Assembly: GCA_965603825.1 (NCBI GenBank)
Contig: CBFDEM010000020.1
Span: 496,001-560,000, forward strand
DNA: 64,000 nt
Reading direction: 5' to 3'
DNA from: Blepharisma stoltei ATCC 30299
Taxonomy: Eukaryota; Protista; Ciliophora
The translations under genes were made by a program, and so were the position numbers. The notes under the pieces are model-generated. The model did no database searches. It was not told where the DNA came from and saw nothing but the letters and a program-made list of their open reading frames with translations. Position 1 is the first letter of the stretch. Every line of letters begins with the position of its first letter. Positions 1 to 64,000 of this stretch are shown here, piece after piece.

Positions 1-491
1 ATCAGCAAAGAACTGCAAGGCCTTGGATAGTGATATTAATGCATCGTCCTCTTTATTGTGCATCTAACTTGTCACTGACACGACACACAATTTGTGGAAG
101 CGAAGCCACAGTTCTTAAAGAATCTTTGGAAGAAATTATTTATGACAATTCAGTGGATTTGGTAATTTCAGCACACTTGAATGGCTATGAAAGAAGTGCT
201 GCAATATATAAAGGAGAGGTCTTAAAAGGAGCAAATAGTACCGCAAATTATTATACAGACCCAGCTGCCCCTGTTTATATAGTTAGTGGAGCTGCTGGCA
301 ATTCAGAAGGCTTGGATCCGCTATATCAAAGTGTTTCAGTCCCTGAAACGACTGAATTCGTTGGCTCAACGTATGGCTATGGAAGAATTTATGCATATAA
401 CACTACTCACTTGTACTGGGAACAATACAATGCTGCAAACTTAACCCAGGTAGATTATCTCTGGATAAGCAAGTCTCAAGCAAGATATTAA
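1..491 (+). CDS. Purple acid phosphatase (ACP7/iron-zinc PAP-like), C-terminal part; 5' end lies outside the window
   Basis: Frame open from base 3: RPWIVILMHRPLYC...DLVISAHLNGYERS...PVYIVSGAAGN...YGYG; metallophosphoesterase/PAP C-terminal motifs; TAA stop. Confidence 0.85.
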   Translation, partial: QQRTARPWIVILMHRPLYCASNLSLTRHTICGSEATVLKESLEEIIYDNSVDLVISAHLNGYERSAAIYKGEVLKGANSTANYYTDPAAPVYIVSGAAGNSEGLDPLYQSVSVPETTEFVGSTYGYGRIYAYNTTHLYWEQYNAANLTQVDYLWISKSQARY

Positions 492-521
492 ATGCTAAAG
501 CGTTAAATTGACTTAAAATAG

Positions 522-1067
522 CTAGTTAAACACATCGCTAATCAGTGATGATTTTTGTTTTTTCATTAATAAAGGTCGGTTAGGCTTCGTGACTGAAACT
601 TTTTTGGTTCCAGCCAACCGATCAATGAAATTTTTATCCACAGCCGACTTGGTTCTTGTAACTGTTTTATTTTTAGAGCAAATAGTTTTTGTTGCATAGG
701 TAGGTGTCTTCTTGTTAAAAGGGGAGATGCTCTTTTTGTTGGATTCTTGAGTGCCTAGATGGGACTTTGACTTAGTGTTACTTAACGATCTCCTCTTTTT
801 TGTGGGTTTACAATTTTCTGTAAAATTTGTTCTTTCTGTCAAAATTTCATTTGGGGCGTCTCCGTCAGCTTCCAAAACGTTTTTGAGATTGGAGATCTTT
901 GAAGATGATTTTTTTCTATGGGATGGCTTGTTTTCTCGCTCTAGTTTGACTTCCATAAGCCTAGAACAGAGGTCATGGTACTCGAAATGAACTCCGTATT
1001 TGTCCTCAACTGTAGGCTGAGGGTGCTCTCCGAGAATTTGTTTATATAGACCATTATCACCTAACAT
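522..1067 (-). CDS. Hypothetical basic protein, 181 aa
   Basis: ATG in TTAAAATG context to TAG; EDKYGVHFEYHDLCSRL segment followed by a K/S/T-rich tail. Confidence 0.65.
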   Translation of the reverse strand: MLGDNGLYKQILGEHPQPTVEDKYGVHFEYHDLCSRLMEVKLERENKPSHRKKSSSKISNLKNVLEADGDAPNEILTERTNFTENCKPTKKRRSLSNTKSKSHLGTQESNKKSISPFNKKTPTYATKTICSKNKTVTRTKSAVDKNFIDRLAGTKKVSVTKPNRPLLMKKQKSSLISDVFN

Positions 1068-1103
1068 TTTAAATTATAACGTCATTAAATTGCAAAAATT
1101 AAA

Positions 1104-3608
1104 TTACAGTTGCTTATTTGAGGATCTTTTCATTATTACGGGGCGGACTGGCATTTTGACAGATTTAACACAAAAATTTGGAAGGACTTGATTTGTTGTT
1201 TCCTTAGCAAAATGAAGGGTTCGGTTTGCTTTAGGCCTTGACAAGTGCTTTACAACGGTCCTAATATTTCGGTCAGGAAGGCTCTGCAACTTTGCTACAG
1301 CAGATTTATTGCAATCGACAATAAAATTTGGTCCTAAATTTCCATTTCTACTTGTAGAAATGCTTCTTTTTCTGGTTTCTATTTCGTTTTTTCTCTCAAT
1401 GTGCGTCCTGGATCTTGAAGCACTCATAAAAGGCTTAAAAAACCTCGATCTATACGTTTTATTATTAAAATTTTCAAAGGAGGTCGAATTGATAATTTTT
1501 GGCGAGATTGAAGTTTGAAAATATGTAAAAGTTGTGAAGCAAGCTCCTATATCAGAAGCTGACACAAAACTTTTAAGCTGACTGGGCTCATCTTGAAGGT
1601 ATATTGGATTTTGAGGGATAGGAATTTTGAATTTAAATGGTTCGTCTTCTATTAAGCAAATCGATGAATTTCTGCTATAAATTGAGGCACTTTCTGATTC
1701 ACTATCGCCGCTGTCACTTCCTGAAGTGTCATTTGAGCCTTCATCTTCTAAGCCTTCATTTTTCTGAGCTCTTTCTATTTCCTCTAAACTGAAATATTTT
1801 GATAATGAAGTATCAATAGGAAATTCATCGAAAACTTGATTCCATTCATTCTCGCTTATTTCTCTTTCATGCTTAGGCTTTATAGAGTTTTTCCTTTTAT
1901 TTAGCTTCTGCTGTCCTTCTTTTGTGCTCGGTCTTCTTGAATTTATTGCGAATTTGGCTTTTTCTTTCATTTCTTGCATTTTTACCTCTCTTTTTTCTTC
2001 TTCAAGTTTTTTTTGTAGCAGCTCTTGAGCAGGAGTTCCTGAAATTTCTTTCATTTTGGACGGTTTAAGCCATCCATGAGTATGGAGAAGCTCAATTTCG
2101 AGATTTCTTAACAAATATGTATATTCAAGCAAGCCTTGCCCAAAACTTACACCAAGCTTAAATAGCTCGCATTCATCATAGGGCTTGATTTCTTCTCCAT
2201 GCTCGTAGCCATAAAAGCTTGTTTCTAGCGTAAAACTGTTTGTAATTCTCAATTCTTTCCATACAACGACTCGCCCGGTCCCCATTTTATCTGCACTGAC
2301 ACTAAATCTGCAATCTTTATATGAAAACAAAGGCGTAACTTTGGCTAAAACCCTTGGAAATAGCCTTACTTTAGTCCAAGAAGCAAATCCACCATCAGCA
2401 GCTGTATTACAACCATAAATAAATGAATTTTTTTTCTTTGCGTGTGCATGCAAATCACAAAAAATCGTCACTTCTCGTTTTGCTGCTAACTTTTTCATCA
2501 TCATTTTTGTATGATAAATGCAAGGGTGAAGTTCCATGTTTGGATTTATTCATTGTCTATTTAAATCATCTCCACTCAAAGATGTTCTATAATTGCCACA
2601 TACAACTCCGTCTGGATTTAGCATAGGGATAATTTTGAAGATATATACATTTCTAAGTGCAATGGCCTGCTTGCTATTATCTAAGAGAAAACTGATAATA
2701 CTTTCCATTACAAAAGAGCCTGTAGTTTCTCCTGCATGGACTCTAGCAGTTATGACTGCTCCTTTTCTTTTATAGAAAGGGATTCCAGAGTGCTTATCAG
2801 CTGTGATAGTAAGCGCATATAATGGAAGTCCGCCAAGAGAATTACACAAAAGCTCTCTTCTATAATGAAGCTTATTTTTGTCTATTCTTATTGGGACATC
2901 TTCTACGATGCCTAATTTTTGTTCAGTTTGAGCAATAAAATTTTGCAGCCTTGAGAAAGTATAAGGCCTTGAAAAAGCGAAAGTAACTTTATCATTATAA
3001 TGCTCAAACTGAAAGGTAAAGCTCAGCATATAATATTTTTTCCCCGACTCCGATTCATATCTATGATATTGCGCATTTTTAATCTCCCTCCATTCATTTT
3101 CATAAGTGGAAAATGACAATGGCTTCATTCCTCTTTGAAATAAGCTGCTTCCTTTACTAAAATTCAAAATATTGATTTTTATGCATCCAATTATATCATT
3201 TTTCACCTCAAAATAAAACCACTGGGAGTGTCCTTTCGAATTAGTATCAGTTTTCATAAGTAAATCAAATTCGGCTGAGGATTTTTGGAAAACACTTTCC
3301 AGGTTCCCACACTCTATATAGGAATTGAAATGGAAAAGTGACGATGGGTTCTTTTTAGGAGTTTCTATAGATGAGGATATAAGTGATTGCAAAAATGATG
3401 GCATCTCACTAGTGGAGTCAGGCTGTGGAAATGAATATATCAAGGTTGAAGGATTCACTGGGAAATGAGCTCCATAACTGACTTTAAACGACAGTGGAGG
3501 CGGAGTTTTTAACTTCCATCTAAATAAAGGTTACTGTGGCTTTGGGAGTTCGGAATATTTGCCAGATTCTGGAAGAGGAATGGGGGCAGGAATATTATAG
3601 TCATACAT
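1104..3608 (-). CDS. Cytosolic carboxypeptidase (CCP/AGBL, M14D tubulin deglutamylase family), ~829 aa; 1 intron, 1 TGA-Trp
   Basis: ECGNL, QWFYF, ARVHAGE, PMLNPDGV..GNYR, DLNRQ[TGA=W at 2550-2552], FCDLHAH, SFTLE motifs; ATG 3608; intron 3520-3534. Confidence 0.9.
3520..3534 (-). other. 15-nt spliceosomal intron GTAACCTTTATTTAG
   Basis: Removes an in-frame TAA and joins the ATG at 3608 to the CCP frame. Confidence 0.8.
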
Positions 3609-3950: not shown

Positions 3951-5138
3951 TTATTCTGCTTTAGCTTCTTCTTTATGCTGCTTGCGAGCAAGTGGTCCGA
4001 AGAATGCATATTTTTCTTCTGATGTTTGCCATCGGCCATGTCCAAACTTGCTGCTTGTATCAATAAATTTAAGGGAGATTTGTTCTGCAGCAGCTCTTGA
4101 AACGTTAGTAATCAGAGATTTTCTAAGAGTGATGACTCTCTTTCTTGTTCCGATAATGGCTCCTTTTACCATTAAAAAGTCGTTCTTGACAACTCCGTAG
4201 TGAGCGAATCCTCCCATTGGAGTGATTTTCTTTTCTGTAATGTCTTGATCAGTGCTGCCATTCTTTGGGTCTTCTGCTTTTCCAATTCTGTAAATCTTTT
4301 TATTGATTTCAGTTCTATGGTGATATCCTCTTTGACCAGCTCTTGGGACAGCGAAGTTGACTCTTGATGGATGCCAAGGCCCAATACAAGCAATTTTTCG
4401 CCTACCTCTGTGAGTTTTTCTTTGTAGAAGTTTGACTCCCCATCTTCTTACGACTCCACTGAAGCCTTTGCCTTTGCAAACTCCAATAGTGTCAATCATT
4501 TCGTTTGGCTGGAAAACTTCACTGACAGCTACCTTTTGTTCGAATTTAGCATAAGCCCAGTCTACTTTCTCAGCAATATTGCTACCACCGTTTACTTGAA
4601 TTTCCATGATGTGAGCTTTCTTTTGTGAGAATCCGACAAGCTGAGTTTGTGTGTGAGCGATGACTCTAACAACAGAGCAATACTTCTTTATTCTGTCTAA
4701 GGCTCTTTTGATTTCTGTGCCAGACTCATACTTTGCTGCATATTTTACAAAAGCGCGTTTCTTTGATTTGACCCAGTTTCTGTAAAATCTTCTCTTGCAT
4801 TCTTCGCTAAGGTGCTGAGCCCAGACAGTGGTAAGAGCTTTGAGACCTCTAGGTGTTTCAATGTAGCCAACAAGCCCTACAATTACCATAGGAGGGGTTT
4901 CTACAATGGTGACAGCTTCAATGACTTCTTTTTGGTGAAGTTTGGAGCCTGGCTTATTGACCTCACGAAGTATGTGTGTCATTCCTGCTTTGTAGCCAAT
5001 AAAAGCTGTGAGGTGAGGAGCCTTGCTAGGGTCATCCTTAGGGAAGCTACGCACTCTACCTCTATGATGCTTCGCTCTTTTTCTTGGAAGGAAGCCTAGA
5101 GACCCATGTCTTGGACGCTCAAATTTGCGGTGTGACAT
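3951..5138 (-). CDS. RPL3: 60S ribosomal protein L3 (uL3)
   Basis: [22 protein letters not shown]...[13 protein letters not shown]; unmistakable eukaryotic uL3. Confidence 0.99.
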
Positions 5139-7970: not shown

Positions 7971-9464
7971 TTATTTACCTTTATATGGAGATGGACCAAG
8001 CATTTGTTCAGGCTTTACCCAGTCATTGAACTGCTGCTCGGTTAAGTATCCAAGTTTTAGTGCTGATTCTTTAAGGGTTGTTCCCTCCTTGTGAGCGGTT
8101 TTGGCTATTTTCGCAGCTTTATCATAGCCAATATAAGGATTTAGAGCAGTGACAAGCATTAAGCTTTCATTCATAATTTTGTTAATTTTGTCTCTGTTAG
8201 CTTGGATCCCTGAAACACAATGATCAGTAAAGCTTCTCGAAGCATCCCCTATAAGTCTTATTGAATGAAGGACATTCTTAATGATGACTGGCTTGAAGAC
8301 ATTTAGCTCAAAATGTCCATTGCAGCCTCCTATGGTGACAGCTGTATGATTTCCAATGACTTGAGCGCAAACCATTGTCAAAGCTTCACATTGGGTTGGG
8401 TTCACTTTTCCAGGCATAATTGAAGATCCAGGCTCGTTTTCAGGCAGTAATAGCTCACCTAGCCCGCATCTTGGTCCTGATCCTAAAAATCTAATATCAT
8501 TAGCAATCTTCATTAAAGAAGTAGCTACAGTGTTCAAAGCTCCGCTGAAATAAACCAAAGCATCATGTGTAGCTAGAGCCTCAAACTTATTAGGAGCTGT
8601 TTTGAAAGGTAGTCCTGTCTCTTTCGCTACATCTGCAGCAAATTTTTCAGGGAACCCTACATAAGTGTTAATCCCAGTGCCTACAGCTGTGCCTCCTTGA
8701 GCCAGATAATAAACATCCTCTAAGCTTCTCTCAACTCTTCTTATTCCATTTTCCACCTGTGCAGCATACCCACTGAATTCTTGTCCAAGGGTAATCGGAG
8801 TTGCATCTTGGGTATGAGTCCTCCCAATCTTTATGATGTCAGCAAATTCTTTGGATTTGTCCACAAGCGCTTGATGCAATTTTCTTAGTCCAGGAATGAG
8901 GACATTGTGAGTTTCTACGGCTGCGGCAATATGCATAGCAGTAGGAAAAGAGTCATTTGAGCTTTGGCTTCTATTCACATGGTCATTTGGATGGACGCTT
9001 TTATCACCTATTTTTCCACCCAAGATTTCAATTGCTCTGTTTGCAATGACTTCATTGCAGTTCATATTGGATTGAGTGCCTGAGCCAGTTTGCCATACGA
9101 CAAGTGGGAAATGGGCCATAAGTTTCCCTTCTATGATTTCATCGCATGCCTTTTGTATTGCAGATGCGTGCTCAGCTGAGAGTCCAAATTCTTTATTTAC
9201 TCTTGCGGCACATTTTTTCAAAATTCCAAAAGCTTTGATTAGAGGGGCTGGCATCCTCTCTGTTTCGCCACCAATGTCAAAGTTTTCAAGGGATCTTTGA
9301 GTTTGAGCACCCCAATATTTATCACCTGAGACTTTGATGTCTCCAAAAGTGTCTTTTTCTATTCTAAATGTGGAGAAGCTTGCAAATGGTTGGGTGTAGA
9401 TATTCTTACCACTTGAGGAGAGTATCTTGGAAAGGAGTAATCGGTTGGCTCTTGATAAAAGCAT
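7971..9464 (-). CDS. FH: Fumarate hydratase class II, mitochondrial precursor
   Basis: [40 protein letters not shown] signature; N-terminal transit-like peptide. Confidence 0.98.
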
Positions 9465-9767
9465 AATATGAATTTATATCCATTATTCAATCTTTTAGAA
9501 ATAAAGATACAAATTAAATGTGATCAAAATCTAAGGATTTATAGCTTATTTTTTGTCAAGGAAGGATATAATGTTGATCAATTTTATATTGGGAATCTTG
9601 ATGCTTATAAATTTAATTATGTTTTTTTAAATGCAATGTCTGTGAAATTCACAAATTTTATTATCAAAAATTTGCCCAACCAACAGATACTGCTTCACAG
9701 ATATTAGTATAGATAGTACGAATGGATTCGTGATGACATTAATTAAGTTCCATGATTTAAATAAAAG

Positions 9768-15600: not shown

Positions 15601-17078
15601 GCTCTATAGGCAGCATCGGAACAGTCAAGGCCTAAATTTGACAACAATCCTATTATGTTGCCTAGCTGAGAAAGTATTTTGTAATTCATAGCTTTTTCAT
15701 GACTTAAACTCAAAAATACACCAATTGCTGTCTCCCCTCCTTCAAAAGGTGTTGCTTTAACGAGTTTGCATAATTTCAAGCATACGTCAAGTGTTTGCTC
15801 TTCAATAGATATGCATGGGAGATTAAGCAAAATATCATCAAGCACTGGAAACAGTAATTCTTTATCATTTTCAAAATGTGCTAACGCAAAGTCCAGCATA
15901 GACATCCATATCGTTATTTCATTGTTTTTAAGAGCTTTCGGCAAGTATTTATGAAAACTTTTCCAAAATAAGTTCGATCGGTCTTCTCTGAACATAATTA
16001 TTACTCTATCATTGAATTTTTCGTTAATAAAGTATAACTTATCAATCATTGTATGCTTCATTAAAGGAATGGAAATTTGTTCTAATATTCGGTCTCCTAT
16101 CCCTTCACTTTCTACAAGAACATCAATAATCCTTAGTAAATTTACTTTGATTTCTGATCCATCACCTTTATGAGTTTCTAACTTTTTGTGAGTTGTCTCC
16201 AATATAGTTATTATTGCAGGTTTCAAAGTTTTTAAAACAAGACTAATTTGGGATTCATCAAACTCGCCTGGAAAAGCCCATTCCCATAGTCTCCTTATAA
16301 GAGTGCTATCTTTATTTGCTAGAAGCTTTATTGACCCTTCCATTAAGGCTATTTTTTGTTTTGTTTTAAACTCTTTGCTCGTAATTGGAAAATGTATTTT
16401 AATAAGATCAAGCACATGCCTTTTTATAATTGTGTTAGGATCAGACAAAGCAGCAAGTATAGCATTTACAGCTAATTTTGTATTCGAAAATGAAATTGAT
16501 TTTTTTTGAAGATAAATCAAAGGAGATGCCCTATGCCTAGATGTTCTGAGAATAAACCTAAAGACTGCTTCATAAGTTTCCTCCTTTAATCTTTCAGCGC
16601 ACATATCTAAAATATCTGAAACTTTCAAAAAAACGTCTTGTCTTCCTTCAGCCCCACTTAATAAACAGCTTACTAATCCACTTAATATATTTTTTAGCTC
16701 AGTAATTCTGATTACATATCTTTCCTCAATAAGTAATAGAAATTCCATCTTATTCTGAGCAGAGCAATACTCGAAATAAGGAAAAAGTCCAGCAGAAAAC
16801 ATATGAAATGATTCAATTGGGGCAGATTGCAATATAAGTTTGTAAATTTCAAGAGTTTTGCTATGCAATCCGGATGGAAGATTTGGATTGAGACACTGAG
16901 ATAGCCTTTTGGCTAAAGCATAGTTCTGCTCAGGAATAAGAGTGCTGTCTTGATATTTCTCTAGAAGAGATTTAATTTCCTGAAGCCATGTAATTAAATC
17001 GCTTCATTCTCACTCCTTAGATCATTTTTCAAAATTATTCAGACTTGCTTGAATTTTCTTTCTAAACTTATTTTCCAT
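12636..17078 (-). CDS. DOP1: Dopey/DOP1 (Pad-1) Golgi-endosome trafficking protein, 1480 aa; 7 TGA-Trp
   Basis: Dopey_N motif E[W]SDLITWL...LAKRLSQCLNPNLPSGLHSKTLEIY; TGAs at 17022, 17010, 17004, 14586, 13953, 13908 and 13089 join four track ORFs in one frame; TAA 12636. Confidence 0.88.
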
Positions 17079-20766: not shown

Positions 20767-20792
20767 ATTGTAACTCATTTTTTTAATTATAA

Positions 20793-38687: not shown

Positions 38688-39512
<825 letters not shown>

Positions 39513-45827: not shown

Positions 45828-45828
45828 G

Positions 45829-45902: not shown

Positions 45903-45995
45903 GCAATATTATTTCATTGTTCTCCTATTCATAGATATTTTATTTGTAACGAATTAAAAGCTTAAATAAACCATTCAAATATATTTCTACTTGCC

Positions 45996-47586: not shown

Positions 47587-47606
47587 CAAAAATTCGTAAC
47601 AAATTA

Positions 47607-48617
47607 TTAGTTTACTCGACTTTTGAGTTTGGAAACTTGTGAAGATGATAAGAGTTTCGGAGATTTTTCTACTGAGGTACCTTTTATACCGTTTTGACTC
47701 TTGGAGAGGTATGGACTTGCTGATCGCAGATTGCTTGTAGACTTTTCTTCTTTGATAGGTGACTTGCTTAGCAGTTCTTTTTGAGTATAACTATTTCTTC
47801 TTCTTCTTTCAATGTAGCTAAAATTGTGATCGCTAGCTCTTGTTCTTAGCATTCTTATTTGTTTCTCCAATTGAGCGACTTGCTCACATTTTTCTTCAAA
47901 TTTCTTTTTGTAAAAATCAGTTACACAATTGGCACTGTCAGATCTATTTTCCTTAGATCTCTCTGGCTTTTTAACTTCAGGCTGCGCTTTCTGCATTGAG
48001 ACTTGCATTTCAAGCCTCTTTTTGTCTTTCATTAACTCAGCAATTTTTGCAGAATCTTTTTTCAAGTTCATCTTCAATGTTGAGATTTCTTGAGTTAATT
48101 TTCTTTCATGCTTCACTTCTGAATTGCTGCTTCTGGATGTCAAAGGAGAACTTTCTTCTCTTCGATGGGTCGGTCTATCAGTTTGTCCTTCTTTTCTTAG
48201 TTTATCAATAATAGATTTGCTGGTTGATGCAAGTTCCAGTCGAGCATTTTCTGATTCAATCAGTTTTTGCTGTGTATTTTCAATATGCAGCTTCATTTGC
48301 TGTTCAATTTTAATGTGAGTCCTAACTTCGTCTTCAAGTTTCTGAAGGGCTTTGTGGTATTGGTCACAGTTTTGATAATTTTCAAACTCCTCCATGAACA
48401 TAAAATCACGCTTGATTTTCAATAAGTCTTTGAGCTCTAAGTTTATTAAAGCTAGTGCTTGCATTGCATCCATTTTGACAATTTCGTTAATTGAAGTGTA
48501 AATTCGGTCAGGTTCTTCTTTCTAATTATGTTGTACCATTGAGGATAATTCTGTATATAAATACACGCAGGTTTCGATTACTGCTTTCTCAATTTTTGAA
48601 ATCTTGTTTTGCTGCAT
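47607..48617 (-). CDS. Coiled-coil hypothetical protein, 331 aa; 1 intron
   Basis: LQKLEDEVRTHIKIEQQMKLHIE coiled coil; ATG 48617 joined by intron 48522-48536. Confidence 0.75.
48522..48536 (-). other. 15-nt intron GTACAACATAATTAG
   Basis: Consensus match; removes in-frame TAG. Confidence 0.75.
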
Positions 48618-49212
48618 ATTTATTAACGATTTAATTGAATGAGTATTTCACATTTTCAAAAGAAGACTGCATATGCATTATTTCTATTTTGCTTAAAAAA
48701 TAAAGGTTAATAAATAATGATATTGTGCAATGCTGCTTTATTTTAGATAATGGGATTAATGAATAAAAAATTAAATGCTAAGAAAAGCTATCACTTTTTT
48801 CAATTATTTTAGCAAGTCATTATAAATAAGATTTTACCGAATAAACTTACATTAAATTTTTATTAATTATATACTCAAGTAAATTAATCAACAATGCGAT
48901 TATCAAATTTAATGTTTTAAATTAATAATTTGTATTAACAAAATAATTATATTAACCCACCCAAAATTATCCTATTATTATTAAAATTTCAATCAAAGCG
49001 TCTATGCAGAAAAATTCCCCTCTAGATAGCATGTGGTAAGAGCTTTTCATTCTGACAAAAAGAGAAGATTGCGATGCTGCATTCATATTTAATAATTTAA
49101 ATTTATTGGAAAGCTTTAATTCTACAATCAGAAGACAAATTGTAATTTATTAATAGCAGCAACCTATTTATTGGCAATATATATTTCAAATAATTTGTTT
49201 CAGAGCATAACA

Positions 49213-49285
49213 GGCTCCGTGGCGCAACGGATAGCGCACCAGACTTCTAATCTGGGGGTTGTGGGTTCAAATCCCACCGGAGTCG
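49213..49285 (+). tRNA. tRNA-Arg (anticodon TCT), intronless
   Basis: GGCTCCG/CGGAGTC acceptor, CCAGA-CTTCTAA-TCTGG anticodon arm, GTGGG-TTCAAAT-CCCAC T-arm, TTTTT terminator 49286-49290. Confidence 0.97.
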
Positions 49286-49488
49286 TTTTTACTAATTTTT
49301 CAAAATTTTGTAAGAACTTTTGCATGACTAAAAATTAATTGACTCATTTAAATTGGATATTTTATCATTTTAATTTATGCCTATTGATAAAAACTACGGC
49401 CAAAAATTAAGAATTTTCTACTTAGTAAATTCACTTAATATGATATGAAACTTGCAATGCTTATGTAATAATTTCCAGATTGAATAAA

Positions 49489-50253
49489 ATGACAGATCCT
49501 TCATTACTAAGCAGCCATTCAACAAGCCCAAGCTCATCTGATGATGATGAACACAAAAATTTTAAATTTCCAAGTGACTTAGTAGAAGGCAAACTTTTCA
49601 GAACTAGAAGCTATTCCTCTAGCGGATCATTCTTGGATAATATTCCAGAAGAGAATGAGGAAGAAATAGAGGAGTACAAAGGGCGAAGGGGTTCACTGCC
49701 AGGAGACTCCCTCAGCCTCCGTGGATCCCCTAGAAGAAAAGATGTTTTTCATAGCTTAATTTCTGGTGAAAAATTCTTAGACGACATCAGTTTAATTGAT
49801 AAGCCGAAAAAGAGGTTTTCTTTTGGAACCACTGAAGAGCAAGTTATTCCAGAAGAGGACTTGCAAGTTAGCGATAAAGATTTTGGGACAAGAGTATCCC
49901 TTCCTGTTGACAAAAAGGATGAGCCCTATAGTGTCAAAAGAAGGAATCCATTTGAGGTCCAAGAAAGCATTGTTGAGGAAAGGGTTGAAGAAGACAGACA
50001 AATCGTTAAGCATGACGAATTTTTAAAAGTGTTGGAAAGATATGAGCCAGAAGAATCTCCACATGCAAGCTTCGTTTCGATTTCTGCAGAGCCTATTAAT
50101 GAAGTTGAAGAGGAAGAAGAAGTGCTGTTAAAGCATGATGAATTTCTTAAAAAAATTACAAAGCAGGATGAGAATTTTGTAAATCAGGATGGAATGAGAA
50201 GCAGCCTGCAAGAAACTGTGGAAGAGGAGGATGAAGATATAAAGGATAATTAA
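49489..50253 (+). CDS. Acidic low-complexity hypothetical protein, 254 aa
   Basis: AAAATG start; repeated IPEE/VEEE and two KHDEFLK motifs. Confidence 0.72.
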   Translation: MTDPSLLSSHSTSPSSSDDDEHKNFKFPSDLVEGKLFRTRSYSSSGSFLDNIPEENEEEIEEYKGRRGSLPGDSLSLRGSPRRKDVFHSLISGEKFLDDISLIDKPKKRFSFGTTEEQVIPEEDLQVSDKDFGTRVSLPVDKKDEPYSVKRRNPFEVQESIVEERVEEDRQIVKHDEFLKVLERYEPEESPHASFVSISAEPINEVEEEEEVLLKHDEFLKKITKQDENFVNQDGMRSSLQETVEEEDEDIKDN

Positions 50254-50354
50254 AGTAATTCATTTCTTTTCGCTGTACTTTAAATATACCGACTAAAATA
50301 ATCTAATCAATAAAACATTGTTTCGCCATGATTGATTATTTAAAAATAAATTAA

Positions 50355-51194
50355 TTAGATGCTCATTTGAAGAATGCATGGTAAATGGTCGCTTCCATAA
50401 ATGTCAGTTCTGATGTATGCTTTTTCGATGTGTTGTTTAAAAATTTCAGAAACTAAAATATAGTCAACTCTCCACCCATATCCTTTTTCGACTGCATTAA
50501 CTTTCCTTCTGCTATAGTGACTATATACTCTTAGTCCTGGATTCAAGTATCTAAAAGTATCAACCAGCTTGCACTCCTCTAATGTTGTATGGAAATTTCT
50601 TCTTTCTTCATCAGTGATGCAGTCCATTTTTTCTTTTCCTTTTATGTCATAAATATCAATATCCTCATTGATCACATTGAAGTCTCCACATCATATTACA
50701 GGCTTCTTTCTTTGAAGCTCTGCTATATAATCTCTTATCGCAAAGTCCCATTGTTGTGTTCTATAAGCATAGTCTCTACCTGCGCAAGGAAAATAAGTAT
50801 TGACTAAAAAGAATTCTTTATACTCCGCAGTGAGAGCTCGCCCTTCAATATCATGCCTCTCTGTGCCTATACCATAAATGACTTGTTCAGGTTTTACTTC
50901 TGTGAGAATTGCAACTCCAGAGTAACCTTTTTTACCATGAGAGCAGTTTCAATACTTGCTAAATGAACTAGGAAGGAGCTTTTCAGCAGCCTCTATATGC
51001 TTATCCTGCAGTCTTGTTTCATTAAAACAAATTATATTAGGAGCCTCTGAGTCAATGAGATTCTGAATCCCATCTTTCATAAGCATTGATCGAAGCCCAC
51101 ATACGTTTCATGATGCTATCTTTATTTGTGTCTTTTCTTCTTTCTTCAGGCGTTTTACCGGCTTTTTCTTTTGTTCAGTTCTTCTTCGTTTCAT
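50355..51194 (-). CDS. AP endonuclease / exodeoxyribonuclease III (EEP family), 279 aa; 3 TGA-Trp
   Basis: KIAS[W]NVCGLRS, ICFNET, KGYSGVAI, EGR, PVI[W]CGDFNV, DTFRYLNP, GWRVDYIL, GSDHLP; TGAs 51108, 50949, 50691. Confidence 0.92.
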
Positions 51195-51484
51195 ATTTTT
51201 TATAAGGTCATTAAAATTATTGCCTTCTTTCCTTTTATGTTCAATATTTTCTCGATTTTCCACAAAATATCCTCCTTCTAACCTAAAATCCGATTTGGAA
51301 TCCAAATTATTGAGATTCCATATTTTTCTGTTATTAAATATTGCATAGAAATTGTTTATAATATAATCGATTTTCTTTAAGTGGCTGCAAAGACTCCAAA
51401 ATTTCTTGTCGCTAATTAGTGACATATTGCACTGAATATATATAAGACTTTTAAGCCCTTTAAATTTTAAAATTGTACAAAGAA

Positions 51485-52033
51485 ATGAACTGGCTCGAGA
51501 AAATATTCCCAAATTGCTGCCAAAGCCGAGATACAAAGAAAAAGAATCCTAATAGCATGCTTGAGCAATCAGAGCTAGACATCAGCATTGTAAATTTGAA
51601 GAAAAGCCAAACTCAAGCAGAATGCCCAAGTCCGAACATGTCTGAAGAGACAAGTGGCAGCTCATTTGATTACAGGACAATCATGAAAGAAGAATATAAA
51701 TTCTTCGAATCAGGCACAGAAAACTCACTGGATCAGATTTCACTCGATTCCCAAGGTAGTGTTGTTGTTCGTGAAACGAAAAATTCTATGATAAGGCTAA
51801 AACCTTGCTTTGAATGCAAAGATGTAGAAAAAAATAAAATAGAAAAGGTACAAAATGACGCACAAAACTTATTTTCTAAATTCCAGTGTGTAGTATGTGG
51901 AGGCAATGCGACTGGCTTTTGCATTGGCTGCCTTGATAAAAGGTATTGTAAATCGTGCCATATTAAAACTCATTCATCAAAATCAGTCATTCATCAGTTT
52001 TGCTCCTATAGCAGGAAGACAAAAGGCCCTTAA
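51485..52033 (+). CDS. Hypothetical protein with C-terminal B-box-like zinc finger, 182 aa
   Basis: CVVC..ATGFCIGC...YCKSCH..TH....H. Confidence 0.68.
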   Translation: MNWLEKIFPNCCQSRDTKKKNPNSMLEQSELDISIVNLKKSQTQAECPSPNMSEETSGSSFDYRTIMKEEYKFFESGTENSLDQISLDSQGSVVVRETKNSMIRLKPCFECKDVEKNKIEKVQNDAQNLFSKFQCVVCGGNATGFCIGCLDKRYCKSCHIKTHSSKSVIHQFCSYSRKTKGP

Positions 52034-52129
52034 TTTCTTTTAATTATATCTAATCACTAAGTACATATTTATTATGATTTTATTGTATTAAAAATGATTA
52101 TACAGAATTTATTTCAAAAGATATAATGA

Positions 52130-52828
52130 TTAAAATGTTTGAAAAAACTCAAGTGGCAGTAGATAAGCTTCTTCCATAAAATTTTGAAAATGCTCAATAG
52201 AACTAAGGTTATCTATATGATGGCCGACCACTGATAAGTCGTCTATAGGCATTAATTCATCATATTCTGAACTGTCAGGAATTTCCAACTGATTCTCTTC
52301 ATTCAGGATTTTTTTAGAATTTTTATGTTTTAGTCGTTTTAATATTGATGATATAATATTTGATGTCAATAAGTGATCATATTTTTTTAGTTGATCTCTA
52401 TTGCCTTCAGACCCATATAGCTTCCGATACTGACGCTTCATTGAAGAGTAAAAGTGATTTTTTATTGAATTATCAGTCCGGCCAGGAAGTAATTTTGAAA
52501 TTTCAGCTCATTTATTTACAAGTTCGAGATGTGATTCAAATAGGACTTTTTCTTCTTCTAGAGTTCAAGGAGTTTTATTTATTGAGGGAGCTAAGTGATT
52601 ATGCCATCGTTCTCTGCATTGTTTTCCACTCCTCCCGTGAATGTTGTATTCTAAACTTAATCTTGCTGCGATATTTGCCCACTGTTGCTTGTCATTTTCT
52701 TGAACTAGCTGCTTGATTGCTTCATCCTCGTAAGGGGTTCATGGTCTTCTTTTTACAGATGTAGGGGGGATAATTTTTGCTTTTTTGGGTGGCCTTCCTC
52801 TTGGCTTGCGAAGTTTATGTTTTGTCAT
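52130..52828 (-). CDS. R2R3-Myb transcription factor with N-terminal AT-hook, 232 aa; 3 TGA-Trp
   Basis: KPRGRPPK; RRP[W]TPYED..QQWANIA..RSGKQCRERWHNHL.P..KTP[W]TLEEE..NK[W]AEISKLLPGRTDNSIKNHF; TGAs 52739, 52565, 52508. Confidence 0.93.
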
Positions 52829-53205
52829 AACGTTAAAAAATGGTAGTAGTCTTATAACTGGAATCAATATTTAAATATTTAAATTTCGCATTATTATTAG
52901 TTAAAATAAACAAAAATGAGTGAAGATAAAAAATTTCTATGACTATTTGCCTTGATAATTGATTAATTATATCATGGATAATTTATTTTTGAAAGCCATT
53001 TAATTTTATGATTCAGCAATCAATTCTTTGAAATCAATTTTTTCGAGAATGAAATCACAAATAGATATGTATAAAAAAGGATTCGGCTGCAAATCTAATC
53101 ATTTTGTGAGTTAATAAGCATTCCTGAATAAAGTTTTAAAATCTTATTTTAGGATATTTTGAGTACCTAAAGTGATGACTTATTTTTCATTTCAAAAAGA
53201 GAATG

Positions 53206-53231
53206 ATATAATCTGCAATTGCAGATTATAT
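53206..53231. repeat. Perfect 26-bp spacerless palindrome ATATAATCTGCAATTGCAGATTATAT
   Basis: 13 consecutive self-complementary pairs; intergenic. Confidence 0.85.
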
Positions 53232-53358
53232 ATGGTTTATAAATTTATATGTAAATCAAGCGGCTCTAGCGTACTCAATTGTTGAAATGATATAAAATAT
53301 TTCTTTATATGTCACATGTAAAACACATATTAGAACACGTAAGCTCATTAGAATTATT

Positions 53359-53628
53359 TTAAGATTTCTTCGGCTTGCTCGACCAGGTCAAAGGGTTTTT
53401 CTTATACCAAGGCCATGGTGGGACTACCAAGATAAGAGATACAATTGTGGAAATCATTGCTGCATATCCTGTGTACATAAATTGCTTTGTTATGCAAGAA
53501 ATAGCAAACCCAATCAAGCAGCTCACAAGAATAATAACTTTGTATAGGTACTCTGCCTTCTTCTGGCCAACATAGTCCTATGTTAATTTTACGATTTCTC
53601 CCATGATATTCCAAAATCCTCTTGCCAT
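53359..53628 (-). CDS. SPCS1: Signal peptidase complex subunit 1 (SPC12), 84 aa; 1 intron; different frame from the track ORF
   Basis: GEI^DYVGQKKAEYLYKVIILVSCLIGF..QFMYT..LVVPPWPWYKKNPLTW. Confidence 0.92.
53578..53592 (-). other. 15-nt intron GTAAAATTAACATAG
   Basis: Removes TAG just before DYVGQ. Confidence 0.9.
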
Positions 53629-53652
53629 TTTAAAATAATTATTAAATTGTCT

Positions 53653-56600
53653 ATGAGACGTAGAAGTTTAGAAAGCTCCGTAGAAAGGAGATTCGCACCT
53701 CAAATGGCAGAACCTATGCCAAACGACGCTAATATGGAGTCTATCATTTCAAACCTTCAGTATAAGTTAACAGGACTTGAGCAAAAATACAATCAGTTTG
53801 TAGGCCAATGTGCCAAGATATTCAAAGAAAATCAATTAAGATCTTATAATGACAGCGGCTCGGAAGACGCAAGTGCTTTGCAGCTTATGCAGGAACTGTC
53901 TTCAGAAAGAACGAAATTTGATAAAGAGCTTTACTCTCTTATAGGCTCTCAAAACAGTCGAGTTGAAACAGACATTCAAGAGATGTTTAAAAGGATTACT
54001 CAGAAAATCAGCGAAGCAAAAGATATAGCAATCCAACAATTGCCTCAGCGTGGAGACTATAGAGAGCGGGTTTCTGAAGTCTTTATTGGTCTGACTGAAA
54101 GTATATGAGCCATTATGTCTAATAAAGAAAGACAAAGGGAAACGAATAGCTGAATTCGGAATATTATGGATCTAGAAGATAATAAGCGGCAAATAGAAAG
54201 GGGCAATAAGGATTACTCAGAAGCAAAGAAATATAAAAATCTATATATTAAGATATTTGAAGAAAAGCACGATCTTGAAGTTAAGCTAAAAGAAATGCAA
54301 GAAATTCTTAACAGAAAAGGGGCTGAAGTGTCAAAATCTGAGCAAAAACTGCACCATATTCAAGGCAAGTTGGATACTCTAATGGATGAAAACGACAAAC
54401 TGAGAGAAACGCTCAGTGACGCAACTAAAAAATATGCGAGACTTGAGCGGTCTTCGAGTAAAAATCGACCGAACCATTTAAGCCCTGCTCGAGATGAATT
54501 AGGAGGGTCCCATCGTTTGAGGAAAACATCTCCTAATAGCTTTAAGTTTTTCCAAGCAACTGATGGATTTAATTTAAGTTTAAAGCTTGAGCTAGAGCGA
54601 GCACATGATGAAATCAAAAGAATTCGCGAAGAAAGAGACTCCTTAAGAGCTTGAAAAGAGCAGAAATCTCAAAGCCTTACGCAAGATTATGAAAATGAAA
54701 AAGCGACTTTCCAAAAGAAGCTTAACAGTCTACAAGATCGTCTATTGAGCTTCTCAAATGTAGCAAAAAATTTAATTGAAAACAGTCTTCAAGCAGATAA
54801 AGCACAAACAGATAGAGATCCAGCAACTTTAAGGAAAACTAGCCAGATTAGAAAAGAGCTAAGAAAAAAAATCCAGCAAATCAAAACTGAAAATCCTGGA
54901 AAGCAAAACATCGAGAGCCCGATGTTGAGTCCACTGGGATCTCCAAAATCTTCAAGTCGAGGAAATAGTCCAATGGTTGATGTGTCATTCTTGATCAAAA
55001 CAAATAAATCTCTAGAAAAAGAAAGAACTCGCTTGGAAAACGCTGTTAGCTATGAGAGAAATCAAGCAGACAAGTATTGTGAAGCTCTTGAGCTTAAAAA
55101 TCAAGAATTAATTGAAAAGGAAAAATTGATTGATGACCTCAACGAAAAAGAAAAATCTCTCCAAAATGAGCTAGAGTTGATGGAAAAAGAAAAAGGAGTA
55201 ATTATTGCAGACTTGGAAACGAGAGAGCTAAAGGCAAAAACTGCATTGAAAGAATTGCAAGAAGACATGAATGAGCAAATTTTTGAATTGACTCAAGAGT
55301 TAGATAGCCTCAAAGAAATTCATTCAAAATGCAAATTGATCGAAAAGCTCGAAAACGAACAAAACACATTTAAAAAGACTTTCCCATTTATGCTGAAAAA
55401 CATTGAGGATATCATTAATGGAATTCATAAGCAAATTGGTGAGAAACTAAATGAAAAAAGCAGCAATCTAGAAAATCTGATCAATGAATTTTATCCCAAA
55501 TTAAAATCTATCAAGTCTTCTCAAGCTGAAAGCAAAGAATACATCACCCTTTTAGAAGAAAAAGTAGAGCATCTTGAGTTTATGCTACAACAGTCTCAAG
55601 AATTAAATCTTGGGCAGATAAATGAGTTTGACGAAGATGTTCAGCAACTAGAAACTCAGAAGCTCAAGGATCAGAAGCAGTATGATCTTATATTGCAAGA
55701 GAACAGAGAATTAAGGGACATAAAAGAAAAATATATTATTGTAGAAGAGCGGCTAAAATGTATGCAGGATCTACAGAAAGACGTTGATTTCATGGAAAAA
55801 GGATATAAGAGCATGTCGAAAGAAAACACTCAAAAATCACTAGAAATTGAGCAGCTGAGATATGAAAATAATGCACTGAGGGAAGAAAAACTAGAGCTAC
55901 TAAAAGAAGGTGATCAGAAAGAAAAAGATATGATGGAACTGCATTCAAAATTCCAAAATGATATAAGAGCTGCTAATTTAAGCATAGAAAGACTTGTGTA
56001 TGAAAATAGCTTGCTAAAGCAAAGCAAAGAAGAGCTTGATAGTATTAAAGAAACTTTGGAAAATGCCAATAAACTAATTGCAGAGTATGAGTCAAAAGAA
56101 AAAAACAATAAGTCTGCTTTGGCCGAAGAAATAAACGACCTAAAGAGATCTCTAAAAGAAATCACTGGAAAAAATAATGAACTGAAGGCTTACTCAGAGA
56201 AATTAAATGGTCAACTTAAAGATTGTAATGAAAAGCTTTCTGGAGCGCTAAACGAAAATAGTATTTACCAAGAAATAATTGATGAACTGAAAAAAGGAAC
56301 AATTCAAGAATTACAGGAAAATCTAAAATCAAGTAGTAAGAAGCTCCAAGATTGCAAATCCAAAAAAAAAGTGTACAAGACCCGCAATAATGATTTGCAG
56401 AAGGAAATTGCCAGTCTGCTTTCGAGTTCAGAAAGTATAGAATCGATACTCAAAGAATCACAGTTAAATGAGAGTCAGTTGAATTCTCAGATTAAAAACT
56501 TGGAAATGACAATCGCAGGAAAAGAAAAAGAAATTGAGAATTTGAAAGTTCATATAATTGCGAAAGAGGCTCAAATTGAAAGCCTCACTAGTATTGAGAG

Positions 56601-59600
56601 CCAAGCAACTGATGAAACTAAAAAACAATTAGCTGTATTGCTAGAACTAAAGCAGAAATTAGAGAATGAAATTAAAATTGCTAATTTAAAAAGCAACGAA
56701 CAGCTAGAAGAAATTGAAAAATTGCGAGAAGAGATCAAAACTAAAAAAGATGAAAATAACAATCTCGGTACTATAACTAGCTTGAAGCTTGCTGAAATTT
56801 TACAACTCAAGTCAGTAGCTGGCTCTAAAGACGAAGAAATTGCAGAGCTAAAGCACAGCTTAAATAATGCTGAATCTGACTTAATTATTAGAGAGAAAGA
56901 AATAGAAAAATTGCATAAAAACATTCAATCTCAAGAAGAGCATATTACTGAAATTAAATCTTTGTATGAAGATAAAATTAAGCATCTCGAAAATGAGCTT
57001 GAGATAAAAATTCAAGACAGCAAAAATTCATTAGCATATTTACAGCAAACCAATAAACAACTAGAAGAAAAAAATACTGCCCTTGGAAAATCAATACAAA
57101 AATTAACTGATGAAAAAGACCAGCTTTTATCATCTCTCTCATCAGCTTCAGAAAACATTTTCCATTTGAATGGAAAATTAAAAACATCTTCTGAAGAGTC
57201 TGCTAGTTTATTATCTCTTAGACAAAATATAGAAGAACTAAAATCGCAACTTAGTGATTCAGAAAGCTCAATAAAAGCTCTATTAGATACTAAGAAAGCT
57301 CTGAAAAGTAGAAATGATGAGCTAGAAAAGCTAGAAATAGAGAAAACAATTTTGATTGAAAAACAAAAACTCTCTATTCAAAATCTGCAAGGCCAGATTC
57401 AAGAAGCTGTGAGTCAGAACAGCAATGGAGAAGGAAAGCTGAGAGAAGAATTAAATTTAAGGAATGATGAAATTTTAGAGATAAATGCCAGAATAAGAGA
57501 ACTTGAGGAAAAGGTAAAAGAGTTATCACAAATCAGAGACAATTTGAAGAAAGAACTTGACGCAAAAGCGAATGAGAATCTAGAAAAAGATAAAATTATA
57601 GAAAATAAGCAGACTTTGCTTGATAATGTGTATCATTCCTTAACAGAATCGAATCAACTTGAAAAGGATGAGTTGAAAAAGGCAATAGATACGCTAAAAG
57701 GGCAGGTTTCAAAGCTTGCAAATGAAAAAAAATTAATAGGAGAAGAATTGTCAGAAAAGAATGCATTAATTCAAAAATTAACTCTTAAAAATCAAGAACT
57801 CACAAAAGAGTGTGAAGAGAGCATAATTAATGTCAATAATCTATCAAAAACAGCTAAAGAAACTCAAGAAAGGCTACTTGATGAATTAAAGACAATTGAA
57901 AAGAGAGCAAAAGAACTCGAAAGCAATTTAAAGTTAAAAGATCAAGAGATCAAGGAGCTTTCTCAAGTAATTGCCCATGAAAAAGGATTAAATGAAATTA
58001 AAACAAAAGAAATAGACGATCATGAACAAAAGGAAAATCAGCTAATAAAAGAGAATAACGAATTAAAGTTGAGCATTTCTCAGTTAGAGTCAACAGTTAT
58101 TGACAAGACCGAGACAATTGAAAGCTTTCAACTAGAAATTTCAAGCTTAAAATCGTTTAAAGAAAGCCTTGAAGAAAAAAATTCTAAAAAAGAAAAAGAA
58201 TTAAACGAAGTCAAACTAAAAATTAAAGAATCGCAAGAAAACAATGAAATTAAAATAAATATTTTAAAGGCTAGTTTAGAGAAAGCCAATTCAGAACTGC
58301 AAACTGCTGAACAAAAAAACAGGGAGCTTCATAATAAACTCAACTCAGATCAAAGTCCCCAAAAATCAAGCCAGAGGGACGCTGATGAAGCTGAAGATCA
58401 AGTAAGAGAAGCTTTGAAACACACCATTAACAAAATCGAAAATGAAAAAAATGAAATGCAGACTGAGTATGAAGACAGGATCGCAAAACTAGAAAAAGAA
58501 TGCAGCAACTTAAAGCTTCAAAAGAATTTCATAGAGATTGGCTTAGAAGAAACAGGCAAACAATTTCAAACAATAAAAGAAAAATATGAGCAATTGTTGA
58601 ACGAAAATAAAAAGAGAGCTGAAAATGTAATTGAAGAGAAAAAGGAAAGGCACTCGGATATTGTAAAAAATGATAATGAGTTTAAGCTTGACTCAAATCA
58701 GCCTCAAAGAGCTTCAATTGACAGCAAAAAGGAGGACATGAATTTAGAAACTGAAATTTCAAATATTGCTGTTGATATTCTTGAGAACCCTCCCTTTACT
58801 ATTGAAGTCCAGGATGATCTAACAATTATAAAGCAGGCAATTGAAGTTCTTATTCAAATTAAAGAGATTGTGAAAAATGAAATTCTTGAAGGGGACGTAG
58901 TTTTGCCTGAAGTTCTGGTTATAGTCCTTAACGACTATAAAAATAGAATTAAAGATTTAGAAAGCCAAAGCATTGAACCCCAGAAATTGCAACAGCAGCT
59001 AATGCCAGGGATTTCAAATAAGGACCAGCTTCCTTTAGAATCTATTCCCGAGGATAATGATAGTGCTGTTTTTGAGTCTTGCTCAAGAGTTCTGGTAAAA
59101 TCAATAAGAATTGATTCAATAATATGGAAACTATTTAGAACGGTCGATGGAAATTTCGATTGGGAGCCTGAAGAAGCATCATCTCTCACTCCAGAAGAGG
59201 CAATCGATGAAGATCTTGATAAGATTAAAGCTGAGCTTGGTGATTACTTTAAAGAGGGAAGCATCATAAAATCCATTCGAGAGCTAAAAGTTTCATTAGA
59301 AAAATTAAAAGAAAACAAAAACAGCCGTTCAAGCTTTTCATTCAATGAAGACCTTGAAATCATGCCAGAAGCTGAAGGCGAACACCTCTCTTTTGACTCA
59401 TTGTCATTCCGCAATGAATTTGGGCCAGGTCTTGGCCTAGCCCCAGTTAAAGAAGAAACTGAGCATGAGACCTCAGAAGATAAAATCAAGCTAAAAGAAG
59501 AGCTTGAAAATTGTCTGCAGGAATTAGAAAATGTAAAAAATGAACTTGCCAAAAAAATATTAAAAATTCAAGAAAAGAAAAGAGATATTGAAAGGCATGA

Positions 59601-59856
59601 AGAACAAATTTTAACCCTCAAAGTGCAGCTTCGAGAAACAGATGAGAAGCTGCAGCATGCAAATACAGTGGATACCGCTTATCTCAAAAGGCTTTTCCAA
59701 GAGCTTATAAAGGGAATCCCACCACTTTCACAGGAAACTGAAAAAATTGTGAAGATATTTTGTGGGATTCTTGGTTTTACCCCGAGCGAAGAAAATAGCA
59801 TAAGCATGGAGAGGAAAGGCAAGAGAGGCAAAAGTGTTTTAAGTTTATTTAGATAA
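53653..59856 (+). CDS. Giant coiled-coil protein with C-terminal GRIP-like domain (golgin), ~2067 aa; 3 TGA-Trp
   Basis: One frame through TGAs 54106, 54151, 54652; C-terminus VDTAYLKRLF..IVKIFCGILGFTPSEE resembles GRIP; alternative start 53704. Confidence 0.78.
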
Positions 59857-61945: not shown

Positions 61946-62506
61946 CTTTCTTAATATTAGTCAACTTGATGAGATTTTTTAATAAATAAAATGCATTGAT
62001 AGTCTCTTAATCAAAGACATAAATTAAATTTTATTTTTGCTTAAAATTATTCATTTTGGTAAAATCATTTCAATTAGTCTATTTTTGAAATTAAATAAGA
62101 ATGTTTATATCATTATAAGTTTAATAATTTGAGATCATTTTGATTTATTTTTTATATTTATTTGATAAGATATTGCATTCTATTCTAAATTATATGACTT
62201 GAGTATTTCATATAATCTACAAATATTAAATGGAAGCATAAATAAACTAAAGCCCTTCTATAATTATCAAAAAAAATATTGTAATTATTTGAATATCTTA
62301 GAACTATTTTAAATTATTTTCTTTTTAAAATTTTATTTATTTTTGAGGGGTTTTTAATTTTATTTTTTTGCTCTAAATAATTGATAAATTTTCATAAATT
62401 TTAATTTTCTTCAAATGTAACACAATTCAAACTGCATTTGGCGGTAAATGATAAACCAGAGTATATAAATAATATATGTCAGTGTGCCATTATAAAGAAA
62501 TATATA

Positions 62507-63544
62507 ATGGATATGATCGAAAGCCCTATAAAAAGAAGCTCAACACTGCCTGATCTCTATCCTGCAAAATTGAAGCATTCTCCAGCCTTAAAAGCTGTTT
62601 CAAAGCACATAAAGCTGCCCACAGAAAGGCCACTCAAACTGAAGCCTTTGAATAGCCTTATTATTAGTAAGCCAACAAAACCAGTATTATCAGTTTCAAA
62701 CAAGGCCACTTGGGACCTTCGCGCATCATATTCAATGGGAGACCTAAAGCTTGGAAAATGCTTGGGGAGAGGAACCCAAGGAAGAGTAGTCTTAGCTACT
62801 ATAAAAGACAAGGAGTGCGCTGTAAAAATAATGCACAAGGCCGAAAAGAAGGCAGGCGAGCTCGAATGAAATATCCTTAGCTCAAGCAAATCCCCATTTC
62901 TTATAAGCAGCTATGGAAAAATAAATGATAAAGATCACATGTATCTTATTTTGGAATTAATGGAAGGTGGTGATTTGTTCCATCTTATCAGAAAAAGAAA
63001 ATTAAATCCCACAGAAATTTCGTTTATTTGTGCAGAAATAGTTTTGGCCCTTGAGCATCTCCATAGCTTAGGGGTAGTTTATAGAGACTTAAAACCCGAA
63101 AATGTAATGATTGACTCATCTGGACACATTAAGTTAGTAGATTTTGGCTTGTCAAAAGTTATTGGAGATGAGCGAGCATGTACAACTTGTGGATCTCCAG
63201 AATACATGGCTCCTGAGGTTATAAGGAAGCAAGCTTATTCCTATAGTGCGGATTGGTGAAGTTTCGGAATCCTCGTGTATGAGCTATTTCATGGATATAC
63301 ACCATTTAAAGGAGAAACGAGTGCTGAAACTTATGAAAACATTTTGGAAGGTGAAATCAGCTTTTCCAGAGTTGATATTGTAGCTGAAAATTTCATTAGG
63401 AGTTTATTAAACCCGGATCCTAAATTAAGACTTGGTCACTCGGAAAGTGATATTTTTAGAATAAAGCGTCACAGTTTTTTCAGAAAAATTGACTGGGCTG
63501 CTACACAAGAGAAATCGCAGTCTTTATTGAATAAGAATCATTAA
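62507..63544 (+). CDS. AGC-group (PKA/PKG-like) serine/threonine kinase, 345 aa; 2 TGA-Trp
   Basis: GRGTQGRV, AVKIM, YRDLKPEN, DFG, TTCGSPEYMAPE, ADW[W]SFG, RLG, HSFF..IDW; TGAs 62867, 63257. Confidence 0.92.
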
Positions 63545-63715
63545 ATGATTCAATAAGTACACTAAAATAAACAATAAAATATATTAATTTCATTTTCAGC
63601 TAATGACAATAATCTAGTTTTTAACATAAAATTTCTACTTTCAGCCTTTTTTTAAGCACAATCTTAATTCTGCAATAGGTTAAATTAGATGTGTCATTAA
63701 ATTTAGAGTCTCCTA

Positions 63716-64000
63716 CTATAATACACTAAAAAGAGGCGATTTATCTTCTGTCATGTCCTGCCTAAAAGCTTCTAACTCTTCTTCTATTTCATCGACACTC
63801 AAAATTTCGCTTTCAGATTCTGATGCTGCAACTTGTCTTTTCCCGGGTAACTCCAGCAGTGAGTCAACCATTTCATCATAATCCTTTATGCTTTTTCTCT
63901 TTTTGGTACTGCAGATAAGACTATTGTATTTAGCGTTTGCTTCCTTAATGCTAGCAGTTGCCGAGCAGTCTGTGATCAAAAGCCAATTATTGAAGCTGAG
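63716..64000 (-). CDS. 3' end of a hypothetical protein; 5' part lies beyond the window
   Basis: Frame open to the window edge; acidic tail ending in TAG TAG. Confidence 0.55.
   Translation of the reverse strand, partial: LSFNNWLLITDCSATASIKEANAKYNSLICSTKKRKSIKDYDEMVDSLLELPGKRQVAASESESEILSVDEIEEELEAFRQDMTEDKSPLFSVL

Follow-up and report, generated by a model that had tools for sequence, protein, structure and literature searches.

UGA as a tryptophan codon in a 64,000-nucleotide stretch of the Blepharisma stoltei macronuclear genome

How is the codon TGA read in the genes of Blepharisma stoltei ATCC 30299? The question is raised by a stretch of 64,000 nucleotides of the macronuclear genome of this ciliate (C20:496001-560000 in an assembly of 64 contigs and 41,464,486 bp; hereafter, the window), for which a preliminary description had proposed that TGA encodes tryptophan and that TAA and TAG are the only stops. 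The present analysis bears this proposal out: in B. stoltei nuclear DNA, UGA is almost certainly a sense codon for Trp throughout coding sequence, and UAA and UAG terminate translation. The assignment of Trp to UGA is supported by homologue columns, Pfam coordinates, internal repeats, a genome-wide tally of kinase domains, transcript contigs, and the set of tRNA genes. The UGA=Trp code of Blepharisma and a candidate for its tRNA-based mechanism are already known from the literature. The reassignment was recognized long ago and has been confirmed genome-wide for this assembly, and the window contributes local examples only.

The window has a G+C content of 34%. Restricting the stops to TAA and TAG increased the summed residues of its open frames with 100 codons or more from 20,318 to 32,544. 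Thirty-one long open reading frames (ORFs) were called as coding on the basis of Pfam matches on their TGA-free pieces. Their products include RPL3, fumarase, PCNA, a kinesin, PP2C, Beclin/APG6, MCM9, and Dopey, as well as a cytosolic carboxypeptidase (CCP), an AP endonuclease (APE), two kinases, a Myb protein, and RING/B-box proteins. Within the coding sequence of frames bounded by TAA or TAG only, 51 in-frame TGAs were found, spread over 23 of the 31 ORFs and representing 0.32% of the codons, close to the earlier count of about 52 TGAs in about 23 genes. Three extra TGAs (17126, 49441, and 61963) located 5' of the first ATG were excluded from the 51. Since the same coding sequences contain 82 TGG codons, TGA accounts for 38% of the Trp codons, in agreement with the 36% obtained from the published genome-wide counts for B. 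stoltei (44,087 TGA and 78,535 TGG). In all 31 ORFs, the terminator was a TAA or a TAG located 3' of the conserved domains, and none of them required TGA as a stop. There were 24 TAA and 7 TAG terminators, including that of the Myb ORF (24 and 6 among the other 30), a ratio that agrees with the published ratio of 21,002:4,707 for B. stoltei. The standard code thus fragments 23 of the 31 ORFs, i.e., about three quarters of the window genes rather than the half estimated previously, and the whole genome should be translated with TGA as Trp.

The pieces on either side of each TGA were searched separately, and the coordinates reached in the profile or in the homologue were then compared. By homologue columns, Pfam coordinates, or internal repeats, 19 of the 21 testable TGA sites of the window were on Trp positions. 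The motifs quoted in the preliminary description were all recovered in place, with the TGA at 2552, 17006, 21206, and 51110 on the minus strand and at 44615 and 63257 on the plus strand. The MCM9 TGA (44615 to 44617, plus strand) is located in an RW motif between the OB and P-loop domains. Full-length homologues were retrieved by a word search that used the piece following the TGA, and in the corresponding column 107 of the 108 aligned homologues have Trp and one has Ile. The TGA of the CCP gene (2550 to 2552, minus strand) follows DLNRQ. In this case, the pieces matched CCP5 up to residue 314 and then from residue 316 or 317, leaving a single residue for the TGA, and the column of 88 homologues was mostly Trp (67 Trp, 20 Tyr, and 1 Phe). 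The second CCP piece did not match any Pfam family; PDB and homologue searches revealed that the M14 domain runs on across the TGA.

In each of the two kinase genes of the window, a TGA falls in the DxW motif. In the PRP4-like kinase (21204 to 21206, minus strand), the DxW(S/T)xG motif reads DV-x-S, and in the AGC-type kinase (63257 to 63259, plus strand), it reads DW-x-S. For both proteins, the Pkinase match stopped at profile position 180 and restarted at position 182, with the TGA in between, and when the two sequences were aligned with 90 kinase domains of this genome, both TGAs landed on the invariant Trp column. The tryptophans concerned had been described as invariant, which does not hold for CCP, where 67 of 88 homologues have Trp and 20 have Tyr.

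Three TGAs were located in the APE gene, all on the minus strand. The first (51108 to 51110), in the context S-x-N, corresponds to Trp67 of human APE1, the next piece beginning at residue 68 (full-length chain 1e9n_A). The second (50949 to 50951) corresponds to Trp119, as the flanking pieces reached residue 118 and resumed at residue 120. Both residues are conserved among APE1-like enzymes (PMC8033172). The third (50691 to 50693) is located just 5' of CGDLN at position 150 of the Exo_endo_phos profile, which is position 207 of APE1.

Translation of TGA as Trp in the Myb gene (minus strand) restored the classical R2R3 spacing. The TGAs at 52739 to 52741 and at 52565 to 52567 provide the first Trp of repeats R2 and R3, respectively, and in each case a Myb match opened at profile position 5 right behind the TGA. 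The third TGA (52508 to 52510), 19 codons past the first Trp of R3, provides the second Trp of this repeat at about profile position 23, inside the match. In the GYF_2 domain (31260 to 31391, minus strand), TGAs are present at 31391, 31283, and 31262, and the translation reads x-YY ... YCxHEE ... DNxELL. The match covered profile positions 4 to 39, with one TGA within it and one located two codons beyond its end. We take the three TGAs to coincide with the Trp positions of the GYF_2 profile. The N terminus of Dopey contains three TGAs in seven codons (17004 to 17024, minus strand; TGAs at 17024, 17012, and 17006), the last of which is read as E-W-SD. The Dopey_N profile resumed at position 25 directly behind the TGA at 17006, which places this site by its Pfam coordinate. 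No GT..AG intron of 15 or 16 nucleotides was found between 17004 and 17024. The resulting reading, K-W-S-K-E-W-E-W-S-D, is an unusually dense run of UGA for decoding by a near-cognate tRNA.

Internal repeats provided a comparison of TGA with TGG within single proteins. In the C-terminal repeats (25297 to 26445, minus strand) of an ankyrin/EF-hand/IQ protein of 1,489 codons, the TGAs at 26445, 25329, and 25299 face TGG in sister repeats. Alignment of the three repeats by MAFFT L-INS-i gave the Trp columns W/M/x, W/W/x, and x/W/W; this alignment replaced a first local pairwise alignment (score of 23), which was spurious. In the Cys-rich C-x2-G-H-x-L-x-W repeats (42496 to 42693, minus strand), the codons at 42126 and 41955 that face the TGAs at 42693 and 42498 in the alignment are TGG. 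The pairs quoted earlier for the repeats (INWLSV and NSWA versus VDxSHA and ESxT; HLMxMP versus KFMWSP; HNLSx and HELEx versus HLLRW and HELSW) were all recovered.

The tally was extended to the whole genome by a six-frame search for Pkinase domains, which gave 134 matches, and 90 domains were aligned. TGA was present in 75 of the 134 matches (104 TGAs in total), and TAA or TAG was present in only 10. Among the 91 in-frame TGAs of the 90 aligned domains, 72 were on three Trp columns (43, 17, and 12 TGAs). The most populated of these is the DxW column (column 232), in which the sequences not holding one of the 43 TGAs have Trp (45), Tyr (1), or Phe (1). This clustering of TGA is far beyond chance. 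Forty Exo_endo_phos matches in the genome contained 59 TGAs and no TAA or TAG. In the 90 kinase domains, all 12 in-frame TAA or TAG codons were within 15-nucleotide GTA..AG segments that are insertions relative to the other kinases. Since all 12 are intronic, a role of UAA and UAG as sense codons is excluded. In-frame TAA and TAG were confined to 15-nucleotide introns or gene ends.

The same columns bear on the identity of the residue inserted at UGA. Reassignment to a residue other than Trp, i.e., to Cys as in Euplotes, to selenocysteine, or to Gly, is extremely improbable, since the TGA columns contain Trp or other aromatic residues and never Cys (45 Trp, 1 Tyr, and 1 Phe in kinase column 232; 107 Trp and 1 Ile in MCM9; Trp, Tyr, and Phe in CCP). 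For selenocysteine, the codon is also far too frequent, at 0.32% of the codons and in 23 of the 31 genes.

Transcript data were available as contigs, rather than raw reads, from four RNA runs of one study, and about 60% of the words of the region 47601 to 53500 were present in them. In this region, the contigs cover the genes and not the spacers. For the gene at 49429 to 50250, the TAA stop and the poly(A) site are located between 50251 and 50277 (plus strand), with poly(A) starting 18 to 24 nucleotides past the TAA (A25 at 50271 and A8 at 50277, as loose contig ends). A 15-nucleotide intron, GTACAACATAATTAG (48522 to 48536, minus strand), was absent from the contigs of three of the four runs. 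This intron directly abuts the start ATG (ATG-GTACAACATAATTAG-AAAG, 48519 to 48536, minus strand), and in the fourth run, the junction is where the contig ends. The poly(A) ends, the loss of the 15-nucleotide intron, and the coverage of genes rather than spacers indicate that the contigs are transcripts.

Six TGAs are covered by these contigs (51110, 50951, and 50693 in the APE gene; 52741, 52567, and 52510 in the Myb gene), all of them unaltered and ungapped, which excludes both editing to TGG and an intronic location at these six sites. A-to-G editing of TGA to TGG in the mRNA, with the code itself remaining standard, had been named in the preliminary description as an outcome that would contradict the Trp assignment; its probability is now practically negligible, as no other letter was present at the six TGAs in the contigs of the four runs. 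The only differences were at 50481, 50490, 50517, and 50865. These were single-run base differences in the APE contigs (the first three in run X4 and the last in run X2) and are probably allelic or due to the second strain that was mixed in for the published mating time series.

The 15-nucleotide introns leave the frame intact and contain the in-frame TAA and TAG codons of the kinase domains, and the TGAs might in the same way be located within in-frame introns, or the genes might be pseudogenes or contain assembly errors. We consider this to have only a minute chance of being correct, since the TGAs fill aligned Trp columns instead of forming insertions, since more than half of the kinase domains contain TGA, and since the six TGAs are present and ungapped in the RNA contigs, although these contigs derive from one study and their independence from the source strain is not assured. 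No TGA column was aligned with protein ends, another outcome that had been listed beforehand as contradicting a sense codon.

A more elaborate alternative is a context-dependent code, as in Condylostoma and the karyorelicts, in which UGA would encode Trp internally and act as a genuine stop near transcript ends, possibly with UAA and UAG also used as sense codons. Published data lend it some support, since UGA is depleted in the 25 to 30 codons ahead of the stops of B. stoltei and the release factor eRF1 of Blepharisma japonicum recognizes UGA weakly in vitro. In the window, only 1 of the 51 TGAs is located within 30 codons of a stop, whereas about 3 would be expected. This TGA (38688 to 38690, minus strand) belongs to a C2H2 zinc-finger gene, whose TAG follows eight codons later. 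However, the depletion observed in the window is nonsignificant (Poisson P of about 0.2), all 31 long ORFs can do without a TGA stop, the intronic location of all 12 in-frame TAA or TAG codons in the 90 kinase domains argues against UAA and UAG as sense codons, and the authors of the published work saw translated UGA only. A context-dependent code is therefore very unlikely for B. stoltei. A limited form of termination at UGA, also unlikely, would be that an eRF1 with weak competence for UGA still terminates translation some of the time at a UGA near the 3' end of an mRNA. Such a residual activity would generate two protein ends, e.g., at 38690, and dense UGA runs, such as that of Dopey, could slow or attenuate translation. 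This idea is only partly new, because a possible competition between eRF1 and tRNA had already been raised by the authors of the genome.

For UGA as a Trp codon throughout coding sequence, the question is then which tRNA reads it. A pattern search of the genome based on the anticodon loop and the T-loop revealed six identical tRNA-Trp(CCA) genes. Three of the six are in tandem (G000:C4:914591-916648), with intervals of roughly 0.8 and 1.2 kb between them. In the tRNA, the acceptor, D, and T stems are regular. Positions 27 to 31 are ACGGA, the loop is CUCCAAA, and positions 39 to 43 are UCCGC; since the pair 27-43 is A·C, the anticodon stem has 4 bp. A UCA twin of the tRNA-Trp body was not found with one narrow pattern, which gave 66 matches versus 140 in the control and no multicopy family. 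The genome also contained four eRF1_1 matches (C33:205799-206182, C11:18227-18598, C37:364393-364764, and C28:311540-311911), which fit three eRF1 paralogues plus Pelota. For Blepharisma, published work reported the absence of a nuclear tRNA-Trp(UCA), a tRNA-Trp(CCA) with a 4-bp stem, three eRF1 paralogues, no C-to-U editing of the anticodon, and depletion of UGA before stops.

In the proposed mechanism, UGA would be decoded by the ordinary tRNA-Trp(CCA). The A27·C43 mismatch would shorten the anticodon stem to 4 bp, which may permit C34 to pair by wobble with an A in the third position of the codon, and the weak recognition of UGA by eRF1 would leave the codon to the tRNA. That a 4-bp stem leads to decoding of UGA is inferred from experiments published for other organisms.

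Several points weigh against the assignment of Trp to UGA. In the window, 2 of the 21 tested sites are off Trp columns: the third APE site, at 50693, where the pieces mapped to residues 206 and 208 of human APE1 and where the residue at position 207 is not Trp, and the second TGA of the AGC-type kinase (62867 to 62869, plus strand), which aligned to a variable Ile/Val/Leu column and was uninformative. Such sites are expected for a sense codon, yet they bring no positive support. In the genome-wide tally, 19 of the 91 kinase TGAs are on variable columns. The search for tRNA(UCA) relied on a single pattern rather than on a full tRNA scan. The RNA runs are labelled only "RNA?" and belong to a single study.

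The attribution of the window to Blepharisma, proposed from the letters alone, was corroborated by the MCM9 piece, which is 100% identical to the protein "MCM9_2 [Blepharisma stoltei]," and by the telomeres. A four-unit array of the telomere unit CCCTAACA gave 28,517 matches in the genome versus none in the reversed control, beginning with base 2 in contig 1. The macronuclear genome published for B. stoltei ATCC 30299 has 64 sequences that run from telomere to telomere and 41 Mbp, with 66% AT, introns of 15 or 16 bp, and UGA=Trp (Singh et al. 2023, PMC9942806); the combination of this code with such introns had correctly been identified as a known trait of Blepharisma. The contig number, AT content, CCCTAACA telomeres, tiny introns, UGA=Trp, TAA-dominant use of UAA and UAG as stops, and tRNA-Trp(CCA) with a 4-bp stem are all shared with the published genome (PMC9942806; Swart et al. 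2023, bioRxiv 10.1101/2023.10.09.561518), and there is no difference of substance.

Among its heterotrich and postciliodesmatophoran kin, Condylostoma magnum and the karyorelicts (UAR=Gln/stop and UGA=Trp/stop) likewise read UGA as Trp by a tRNA-Trp(CCA) with a 4-bp stem and lack tRNA-Trp(UCA). They differ in that UAA and UAG are sense codons there and never here, where, moreover, no window gene requires a UGA stop. Stentor coeruleus is likewise a heterotrich with introns of 15 or 16 nucleotides but uses the standard code, as previously noted, and has only tRNA-Trp genes with a 5-bp anticodon stem (bioRxiv 10.1101/2023.10.09.561518). Outside the ciliates, the trypanosomatid Blastocrithidia nonstop (Kachale et al. 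2023) differs in having reassigned all three stops but likewise reads UGA as Trp by means of a tRNA-Trp(CCA) whose anticodon stem is shortened. In ciliates, the Ser67 substitution in eRF1 that was put forward for Blastocrithidia is neither required nor sufficient. The Euplotes code (UGA=Cys) differs from that observed here, as there was no Cys in any of the kinase, MCM9, and CCP columns holding TGA. Of the NCBI codes, table 4 (Mycoplasma/mitochondrial), which served for the annotation of B. stoltei, has the same codon meanings (TGA=Trp, TAA and TAG as stops), although it permits alternative starts that are unused here. These meanings are correct for this genome. Table 15, the "Blepharisma Nuclear Code" (UAG=Gln), is wrong for it despite the name, which is a misnomer, as this is not the code of Blepharisma (PMC11687900). 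This table was considered and rejected, since the eight in-frame TAGs of the kinase domains were all intronic.

The use of TGA is not uniform among the window genes. The housekeeping genes for RPL3 (3954 to 5138, minus strand), fumarase (7974 to 9473, minus strand), and PCNA (45966 to 46730, plus strand) contain no TGA, and there are six TGG codons in the RPL3 gene and three in the fumarase gene, which suggests that highly expressed genes favor TGG. The base 3' of the codon was A for 30 of 53 coding TGAs versus 28 of 73 TGGs; an analysis of the +4 adenosine appears in the extended data of a published critique.

Other candidate 15-nucleotide introns were detected from the DNA alone. One of them, GTAAAGATAATATAG (36883 to 36897, plus strand), would join two open frames of the Beclin/APG6 gene, and similar candidates are located at 23265 to 23279 and at 23540 to 23554 (minus strand). 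Two tRNA genes, for tRNA-Phe(GAA) (45828 to 45902, minus strand) and tRNA-Arg(UCU) (49213 to 49285, plus strand), sit in short intergenic spacers. The ORF at 53587 to 59853 (plus strand) has 2,089 codons, and Glu, Lys, and Leu account for 40% of its residues. A piece of 1,733 residues of this ORF matched no Pfam family, and the protein resembles a coiled coil. This ORF also explains the strong AT skew at 56 to 60 kb.

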